32,000 nucleotides of DNA from Wallemia ichthyophaga EXF-994 (GCF_000400465.1 NW_008806274.1:270244-302243), one strand, 5' to 3'; counted from the stretch's first letter, positions 26,812-27,810 are shown. A program made the numbers and translations. The notes: generated by a model from the sequence alone, not told the origin.

Positions 26812-26959
26812 AGTGTTGGTGAGAGATGCGATGACGCGGCGGATGCGGTGAGTGGGAGACGCAACGGGAGCTGTGGCCGGCGGGCGCGCGCCTATCGAAT
26901 CTTGCAGCGCACGCCTTCACCTCTCCCGAATCCCCGTCTCCCGCTCTCGCTTCTCGCTG

Positions 26960-26967
26960 CAGTCACA
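26960..26967 (+). promoter_or_regulatory. Homol D box (CAGTCACA), a ribosomal-protein gene core promoter element
   Basis: Exact match to the Homol D motif known from Schizosaccharomyces pombe RP genes, located upstream of RPL37. Confidence 0.55.
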
Positions 26968-27146
26968 TATCTTCCACCGCGCACACAGCTCACGGAGAAA
27001 GCAAAATAGCGCTGTAAATGCGCACAGCTCACACGCAATCACCCCGTCTCCCGCCTCCAGGACACCCGCAAAAATCAAATTTTCGATTTGTGCCCGCCAG
27101 ATTTTGTTGCGATCCGCCTTCGCCTTTTCCAGGACCGTAAGGAAAG

Positions 27147-27387
27147 GTGTGTGCAGCGTAATTTTTGATAGCGCAGCCCTCTTACAATCCCGCGCAGGTA
27201 AGCTGGCGTCGTTGCTGCTGCTGCGTTTGATCACCGCTCACCGCTCTCCAGGTAAGCTAGGGAGGTAGCGAGAAGACTCTGCTCACACAGCCAAACAGGT
27301 GAGGAGAGCATCTTCGAGCATTCCGTTGCTAACCATGCGCAGGTCGGTGTGGTTTGCGTTTCTCTCCCTCTGCTCACCGCTCTCCAG
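27147..27387 (+). other. Chain of five abutting intron-like units in the RPL37 5' leader
   Basis: Units 27147-27197, 27198-27251, 27252-27298, 27299-27342 and 27343-27387 each have a GT start, a CTYAC/CTAAC branch motif 10-13 nt before the end, and a CAG end. Confidence 0.7.
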
Positions 27388-27396
27388 ACCAGCAAG

Positions 27397-27810
27397 ATGA
27401 CTAAGGGTACCACATCTATGGGTAAGAGGCAAAGCGTCAAGTCCCACGGGATTTGTCGCCGTTGCAACGGTCGCTCATGGCACTACCAAGTGAGTTACCA
27501 CGGGATTCGACGGGTTTCTACCGCTTCCCGCGACACCTAAACGCCTAATGCTGACATCCCCACCGCGCCAATCCTGCGCTAGCTGTGGATTTCCTAATGC
27601 CAAGACACGCTCTTTCAACTGGGGTGCCAAAGCTAAGAGAAGGTGCGCCTTGGTTTTGACACTCCCCGGACTTGTCTTATCACTCATCTTCCCCTCAGAT
27701 CCACCACTGGTACTGGCCGCATGAGATCCCTCAAGTATGTCCCAAGACGCTTCAAGAACGGCTTCCGCGAGGGCACCACCGCTACCAAGAAGGTTTCAGC
27801 TTCTGCTTAA
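27397..27810 (+). CDS. RPL37: 60S ribosomal protein eL37, 93 aa
   Basis: [11 protein letters not shown]...[12 protein letters not shown]|[26 protein letters not shown]|[25 protein letters not shown]. Exons 27397-27489, 27566-27642 and 27699-27810. The first intron ends in CG, not AG (see findings). Confidence 0.95.

Follow-up and report, generated by a model that had tools for sequence, protein, structure and literature searches.

Ratchet points in long animal introns were reportedly described by Duff et al. and by Sibley et al. in 2015. According to one report, recursive splicing across zero-nucleotide exons occurs at such points in Drosophila (Ubx) and in long introns of vertebrates (10.1101/224170). 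The first-pass annotation of the DNA considered here had placed AG/GT recursive splicing (a slash marks the splice boundary throughout) in long animal introns. A restriction to these is out of date: SPNCRNA.445 of Schizosaccharomyces pombe, the host of snoRNA61, contains a zero-length exon in a 336-nt intron, a feature conserved in other Schizosaccharomyces (10.1101/226894), and the 375-nt intron of BOT1 in Cryptococcus neoformans is split into 210 and 165 nt around a so-called 'pivot point' (10.1101/224170). A further type of complex intron, the stwintron of filamentous ascomycetes, is nested, the internal intron interrupting the donor, the branch or the acceptor of the external one (PMC6616335, PMC8469720).

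Here, a 32-kb stretch of DNA (the window) from the halophilic basidiomycete Wallemia ichthyophaga was analysed. Upstream of RPL37, the gene of ribosomal protein eL37, 241 nt on the plus strand (27147-27387) are tiled exactly by five intron-like units of 51, 54, 47, 44 and 45 nt. This train resembles animal ratchet points in the YAG/GT abutment, in the predicted regeneration of the donor, in the possibility of several sites per intron and in the prediction that no nucleotide of the junction would be kept. Segments between animal ratchet points measure kilobases, and some of these systems rely on a cryptic recursive exon recognised by exon definition. The Wallemia segments, in contrast, measure 44-54 nt, 241 nt in total, and lie in the putative 5' UTR of a ribosomal-protein gene, and their stepwise removal is a prediction. 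S. pombe and C. neoformans are, like Wallemia, fungi with intron-defined short introns, and in both the zero-nucleotide junction lies inside an annotated long intron. They display one internal junction and pieces of 165-210 nt, whereas W. ichthyophaga has four internal junctions and W. mellicola two, all pieces are minimal, and the number of modules varies by species.

Stwintrons share with the train the nature of a complex intervening sequence, consecutive standard splicing reactions and a link to intron duplication. Their order of removal is however forced by nesting, while the Wallemia modules stand side by side and each of them is complete. Identity with a stwintron was rejected, as all units possess their own intact signals, the joins give G+G and not a split GT, and nothing is nested. 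Fungal ribosomal-protein genes also carry ordinary 5'-UTR introns. Like the train, these lie shortly before the start codon of a highly expressed gene, and the probable benefit is the same; in Wallemia, the leader intron appears multiplied 3-5 times with no exon between the copies. From the known zero-exon cases, the Wallemia feature is set apart by several junctions, modules of exclusively minimal size and a species-variable module number, and full-text literature searches yielded no description of such intron trains.

Each unit displays a GT donor, a CT[TCA]AC branch motif with its A 10-13 nt from the unit end, and a CAG acceptor (Table 1). At the four internal CAG/GT junctions (27197/8, 27251/2, 27298/9 and 27342/3), the acceptor directly abuts the next donor, so that the exon length is zero. 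The end of unit 5 is followed by the 9 nt ACCAGCAAG and by the RPL37 ATG at 27397. Cutting the sequence at these positions reproduced to the base the five-unit tiling, the sizes, the signals and the CAG/GT junctions that the first-pass annotation had described.

Table 1. Coordinates of the features in the RPL37 region of W. ichthyophaga (positions in the window) and in W. mellicola (positions in locus L001).
Feature	Position	Strand	Signals and remarks
Second weak intron-like unit	26962-27009	+	GTCACA..ATAG; 4 nt from the 27014-27060 unit
Sixth candidate	27014-27060	+	GTAAAT..CCAG; A at donor +5; distant branch
AT-rich element CAAATTTTCGATTTGTG	27076-27093	+	aligns with W. mellicola TTAAATTTTTAATTTTTG
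AT-rich motif sites	window 27076-27093; L001 2775-2795; L021 ~1240; L019 ~1288		
Putative non-coding exon 1	27124-27146	+	ends AAAG/GT; start inferred
Unit 1 (51 nt)	27147-27197	+	GTGTGT..CTTAC..CGCAG; branch 13 nt from end
Unit 2 (54 nt)	27198-27251	+	GTAAGC..GCTCAC..TCCAG; branch 11 nt from end
Unit 3 (47 nt)	27252-27298	+	GTAAGC..GCTCAC..AACAG; branch 13 nt from end
Unit 4 (44 nt)	27299-27342	+	GTGAGG..GCTAAC..CGCAG; branch 10 nt from end
Unit 5 (45 nt)	27343-27387	+	GTCGGT..GCTCAC..TCCAG; branch 11 nt from end
Exon with last 9 nt of leader (ACCAGCAAG) and RPL37 codons 1-31	27388-27489	+	
RPL37 coding intron 1	27490-27571	+	end 27565 (..CACCG) or 27571 (..GCCAA)
RPL37 coding exon 2	27572-27642	+	start 27566 if RQ codons included
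RPL37 coding intron 2 (56 nt)	27643-27698	+	GTGCGC..CAG
RPL37 coding exon 3 including stop codon	27699-27810	+	
W. mellicola unit A (47 nt)	L001 2844-2890		GTGGGT..ACTGAC..CATAG
W. mellicola unit B (49 nt)	L001 2891-2939		GTAAGC..GCTTAC..TTTAG
W. mellicola unit C (52 nt)	L001 2940-2991		GTATGC..GCTAAC..TTCAG

As reference served introns that must be excised for long open reading frames to become continuous, which gave ~12 confident coding-region introns in the window. They measure 44-59 nt and have GTGAGN, GTAAGG, GTGGGT, GTGCGT or GTGTGG as donor, CTCAC, CTAAC, CTGAC or CTTAC as branch motif 10-15 nt from the end, and CAG as acceptor in nearly all cases. The five units match these real introns, with the exception of the donor of unit 5, GTCGGT, a weak site with a C at +3 that was unseen among the ~12 curated introns. 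The GTGAGG donor of unit 4 is identical to that of an intron of the proteasome gene (26161-26117), and GTGTGG, to be compared with GTGTGT of unit 1, serves as donor of one real intron in the window. Units of 44-54 nt against curated introns of 44-59 nt also bear out the claim that each unit is sized like a normal intron of this genome. Taken as a whole, the 241 nt form an unusually long intervening sequence when set against the same curated introns. The genome of W. ichthyophaga is compact (9.6 Mb), with predicted introns averaging 61 bp (PMC3849046).

The background of such arrangements was evaluated by scanning both strands of the 32-kb window for units of 38-75 nt with the pattern GT..CTNAY..YAG, CTNAY being 8-22 nt from the end. 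This permissive scan delivered ~250 units per strand. Chains of at least three abutting units were found in the RPL37 leader train only, on either strand of the window; the remainder of 64 kb of real sequence contained none, and neither did six other loci. In 20,000 dinucleotide-preserving shuffles of the W. ichthyophaga intergenic region, the longest chain contained two units (0.46% of shuffles) and at least three were never reached. A chance origin of the train is excluded. The two-unit chains at 2109 (+) and 17647 (-) were discarded, being most likely a real intron followed by an exon that starts with GT, or weak chance matches.

Alignment of orthologous RPL37 leaders, as suggested in the first-pass annotation, revealed a train of three abutting intron-like units (47, 49 and 52 nt) in W. 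mellicola, in seven strain loci and in the CBS 633.66 reference. It displays two internal TAG/GT junctions, and its end, CAG/ACCAGCAAG-ATG, is identical to that of W. ichthyophaga. Shuffling the intergenic region of W. mellicola 20,000 times produced no chain of three. The two species differ by synonymous changes in 34 of the 79 codons keeping the same amino acid, and most of the leader, including the interior of the units, is unalignable between them. The comparison of these two species indicates that the sequence has drifted except for the splice signals, the size of the units and their head-to-tail register, which are conserved, and from it the train arrangement is considered to be real and inherited. 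The structural reading proposed earlier, a train of minimal introns with empty exons, is thus upheld by the match with real introns, by the shuffles and by the three-unit train of W. mellicola.

The upstream sequence provided a second type of comparison. From an AT-rich element (AAATTTTC / AAATTTTT) to the first donor, the distance is 70 nt in W. ichthyophaga and 67 nt in W. mellicola. From the same element to the ATG, the distance differs by 96 nt between the species, and the lengths of the trains differ by 93 nt. Since the shift in anchor spacing is close to the difference in train length, the train appears as a cassette of variable length flanked by two fixed points, as would be expected if it were removed from the RNA. 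The AT-rich element is likely a promoter or a leader anchor. In both Wallemia species, the segment before the first donor ends with AAAG/GTGNGT, and a pyrimidine run (CTTTTCC / CTTCTTGG) is located 23-24 nt upstream of the first donor. RPL37 is preceded by an AT-rich motif (CAAATTTTCGA / TCAATTTTC / TTAAATTTTTAA) in both Wallemia species and also in Fomitopsis and Tilletia, the last two with motifs resembling CAAATTTTCGA / TCAATTTTC. This motif may represent a promoter element shared by ribosomal-protein genes.

Further upstream, the sixth candidate of the first-pass annotation does exist at 27014-27060, but it is probably not part of the train. It is weak because of the A at donor +5 and the distant branch, it is located upstream of the AT-rich element, W. 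mellicola has no counterpart of this unit, and its GT is destroyed by T>C at 27015 in strain L014. Neither this unit nor the one at 26962-27009 has a G at donor +5, and both are probably chance matches or decayed relics. A HomolD-like box (CAGTCACA, 26960-26967), identical to the HomolD box of S. pombe ribosomal-protein genes, lies 437 nt upstream of the ATG. The intergenic region of W. mellicola does not contain it, and it was rejected as a chance occurrence. The neighbouring proteasome-subunit gene is divergent and runs from 26812; the rest of the window contains ordinary nuclear genes and no other ribosomal-protein gene.

The relationship between modules was investigated by local alignments compared with shuffled unit interiors. 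The tails of units 2 and 5 are identical at 16 of 16 nt (p<0.001), confirming the common 16-mer GCTCACCGCTCTCCAG noticed earlier, and the similarity between units 3 and 5 is also significant. Across species, 18 of 21 positions in the body of unit 3 (TAGCGAGAAGACTCTGCTCAC) are shared with W. mellicola unit C (p<0.001), and unit 5 has a tail (TCTGCTCAC-CGCTCTCCAG) that matches the one of unit C (p=0.004), an identical ACCAGCAAGATG following in both. Unit 2 resembles W. mellicola unit B in its head (GTAAGCT) and its tail (CGCT[CT]ACCGCT). The other unit pairs showed no significant similarity, and most pairs resembled each other no more than shuffled sequences do. The significant similarities between modules support the earlier suggestion of duplication as a partial origin of the train. 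W. mellicola unit C corresponds to the head of unit 3 joined to the tail of unit 5, a mosaic that points to an in-register change of two modules. Such a mosaic would result from recombination, in register, among the repeated TCTGCT(C/A)AC branch regions, either by a two-module deletion in W. mellicola or by a two-module duplication in W. ichthyophaga, alternatives that two species cannot polarise.

No leader train was found in RPL37 of four other basidiomycetes, namely Naematelia, Tilletia, Rhodotorula and Fomitopsis. Over the 400 nt that precede the ATG of their RPL37 genes, a leader intron is not obvious, and their first intron lies within a few bases after the ATG. From the absence of a leader intron in these four genes, the train is probably specific to the Wallemia lineage.

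Variation within W. ichthyophaga was followed in ten strain loci that differ from the window by 1-11 substitutions over 1 kb. Across the ten strains, the train contains seven variable positions and zero indels, and all seven variants spare the GT, the AG and the CTNA core of the branch. The SNP at 27185 in unit 1 converts CTTAC to CTTAT, which still fits CTNAY, the one at 27295 in unit 3 leaves the CAG intact, and the five in the interior of unit 4 (27306, 27310, 27314, 27336 and 27338) are all situated outside GT, branch and AG. The sparing of the signals is consistent with constraint, the seven SNPs alone being not significant (~p=0.09). An upstream ATG in unit 4 (27335-27337) is polymorphic, as it is abolished by T>C at 27336 in three strains (L010, L012 and L017). 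Retention of unit 4 would open a reading frame that overlaps the RPL37 start. In W. mellicola, unit C also contains an upstream ATG, at L001 2942.

Altogether, we consider it fairly probable that the 241 nt represent a 5'-UTR train of tandem minimal spliceosomal introns which are removed stepwise across zero-length exons. Its anatomy, its non-random nature, its conservation and the homology between modules are established by the sequence comparisons. We infer that the whole train is transcribed and that it is removed module by module, and it may bring a benefit beyond that of an ordinary leader intron. Transcription would start upstream of 27147, probably 20-70 nt downstream of the AT-rich element. 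As Wallemia introns are short and narrow in size (44-59 nt in the window), the modules would probably be recognised across the intron and each removed as one unit. The binding sites of an acceptor and of the next donor overlap; neighbouring modules would thus probably not be engaged together, and removal would be sequential. Excision of a given module would join the G of CAG to the G of the next GT and leave both neighbours intact. After each excision, the donor would again stand in a consensus CAG/GT context, just as at the ratchet points of recursive splicing, with GGAAAG^GTAAGC (unit 1 out) and CCCGCGCAG^GTAAGCTAGGG (unit 2 out) as predicted intermediate junctions.

Any donor could in this scheme pair with any later acceptor, and all routes would lead to the same mRNA, which would make removal robust. 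The end product would be exon 1 followed by ACCAGCAAG and the ATG, that is, a single short leader. Retained modules would lengthen the leader and could add the upstream ATGs mentioned above (27335 and L001 2942), a cost which would give selection a reason to keep every signal. The train itself would originate and change in size (five against three modules) via in-register recombination or duplication between modules. In the simplest functional reading, the train would be a multiplied form of the ordinary leader intron of a ribosomal-protein gene. Nothing in the analysis spoke for or against the roles put forward in the first-pass annotation, namely splicing-load sensor, expression enhancer or generator of leader isoforms.

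Several other explanations were weighed against stepwise removal. It appears unlikely that 27147-27387 leaves the RNA in a single step, as one long intron, or in two or three larger pieces, with the internal CAG/GT sites being cryptic or back-up sites that remain from old duplications and are normally unused. In principle, the outer donor together with the last branch and acceptor would be sufficient, and the final mRNA would be unchanged. The weak donor of unit 5 and the existence of fungal introns of 336-375 nt in other species fit this explanation. An intron of 241 nt would however be an extreme outlier compared with the 44-59 nt of the window introns. Unused sites should moreover decay, whereas the internal signals are intact in 5/5 units, and in 3/3 units of W. 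mellicola, despite diverged interiors. Removal module by module and removal in larger pieces cannot be distinguished from sequence alone.

A mixed leader, in which some units, or the 8-nt CCAAACAG and the 4-nt GTCG, are kept as small exons and several isoforms arise, is likewise held to be improbable. The sequence does permit both of the micro-exon readings given in the first-pass annotation, GTCG resulting from the use of the alternative unit 5 donor GTGTGG at 27347. An early AG (CACAG, 27284-27288) is also available, though it follows the branch A by only 5 nt and is too near for normal use. Intron retention has been reported as the main mode of alternative splicing in W. ichthyophaga (PMC3849046), and RPL37 of Naematelia offers a precedent with a 6-nt micro-exon. 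Every unit nevertheless carries the full set of intron signals, which is unexpected for an exon (~0.8% chance per position), and retention of unit 4 would add its upstream ATG in overlap with the main start.

We regard it as very unlikely that the train is untranscribed, the start lying inside or after the last unit, and that the units represent promoter sequence or fossil introns. Very short leaders are frequent in mRNAs of ribosomal proteins, which makes a start within or past the train conceivable, and pyrimidine runs such as CTCTCC just before ACCAGCAAG-ATG do resemble start sites of ribosomal-protein genes. Against this stand the 3-5 complete signal sets kept in register across species whose silent sites have diverged, and the distance of the upstream anchor, which is fixed to the first donor and not to the ATG. 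Among the public data, scans of metagenomes and metatranscriptomes with Wallemia RPL37 start patterns returned no Wallemia sequence and a single chance match (L022), apparently prokaryotic. The W. ichthyophaga members of the eL37 cluster in the protein collection are NCBI genome models, with no transcript-derived entry, and the JGI/RefSeq model of W. mellicola gives the coding range only, without UTR.

The GC- and pyrimidine-rich composition and the long spurious ORFs overlapping the train (26852-27268 on the plus and 26917-27234 on the minus strand) could be invoked for a chance pattern, for a simple tandem repeat, for hidden coding sequence or for a structured RNA. All of these are hardly credible: shuffles never reach a chain of three, Tandem Repeats Finder detected only TCACCGC (7 nt, 2.3 copies), the overlapping ORFs have no Pfam match, Rfam gave no match below E=0.39 to a known RNA family or snoRNA (three hits far under the gathering thresholds), and the folding z-score of +0.6 is no better than that of shuffles. 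GGAGAGC (27303-27309, after the unit 4 donor) is complementary to GCTCTCC in the tails of units 2 and 5 (27243-27249 and 27379-27385). As the overall fold is not unusual, this complementarity is probably due to chance.

The gene downstream of the train was identified as that of ribosomal protein eL37 (PF01907, a domain present on all 120 matches listed). The closest among the matches listed are a 68-aa W. ichthyophaga model (100% over its length) and the 92-aa eL37 of W. mellicola (88%). The protein keeps the CxxC...CxxC zinc ribbon of eL37, and an intact product needs a non-AG acceptor in coding intron 1. This intron was observed to have a GTGAGT donor (27490) and a CTGAC branch (A at 27554), with no AG before the essential SCASC codons. 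Exhaustive enumeration of donors and acceptors in coding intron 1 gave no canonical pair that yields an intact protein. The only in-frame acceptors are ..CACCG/CGC and ..GCCAA/TCC, the former retaining RQ and the conserved 11-residue spacing of the zinc ribbon. Use of the first AG (TAG, 27580-82) was rejected, as it produces a frameshift to a stop. The sequence of coding intron 1 is identical in 10 strains. The lack of an AG acceptor in this intron accounts for the truncation of the public W. ichthyophaga eL37 models, which comprise 68 aa and begin at an ATG within the intron.

RPL37 contains two coding introns in W. ichthyophaga (27490-27698) and three in W. mellicola (48, 49 and 51 nt; L001 3100-3386). 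Only the first position is common to both species, and it is itself shifted by two codons. The differing positions point to an unusually fast intron turnover in RPL37. It was also observed that the JGI/RefSeq eL37 model of W. mellicola CBS 633.66 (P0121) has 98 aa, while the strain models have 92 aa. The 98-aa model makes another splice choice at coding intron 2 (L001 3184-3234), which inserts TAFSSFH, and it is probably an annotation error. In Naematelia encephala RPL37 (L018 1501-1669), a 6-nt micro-exon, GTGAAA, was noticed directly after the ATG, between introns of 59 and 87 nt. Joining of the exons reproduces MVKGTPS, and the apparent two-unit chain of this gene was dismissed as being in fact this micro-exon. 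The occurrence of the train beside a non-AG coding intron in one and the same gene hints that splicing of RPL37 may be regulated in the Wallemia lineage.

Gene finders and read mappers that work with minimum-intron or minimum-exon settings will miss trains of this kind. If RNA data confirm stepwise removal, the RPL37 leader of W. ichthyophaga would rank as the most compact substrate for multi-step splicing described so far, with four ratchet-type junctions in 241 nt. It would mean that intron-defined spliceosomes handle zero-length exons, and do so repeatedly, and it would offer a simple natural substrate for studying the packing limits of the spliceosome and the order in which abutting introns are removed. 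Three against five modules in sister species, recombined in register, provide direct sequence evidence for a change in intron number by duplication or deletion of whole introns, and whole-intron duplication is one of the routes proposed in the long-debated question of intron gain. More tentatively, the Wallemia spliceosome may tolerate only a narrow range of sizes, so that a leader intron would grow by whole modules. Trains would then be a heritable and active route of intron gain and loss with obligatorily sequential zero-exon removal, and ribosomal-protein expression might be tuned, in output or in timing, by the number of modules.
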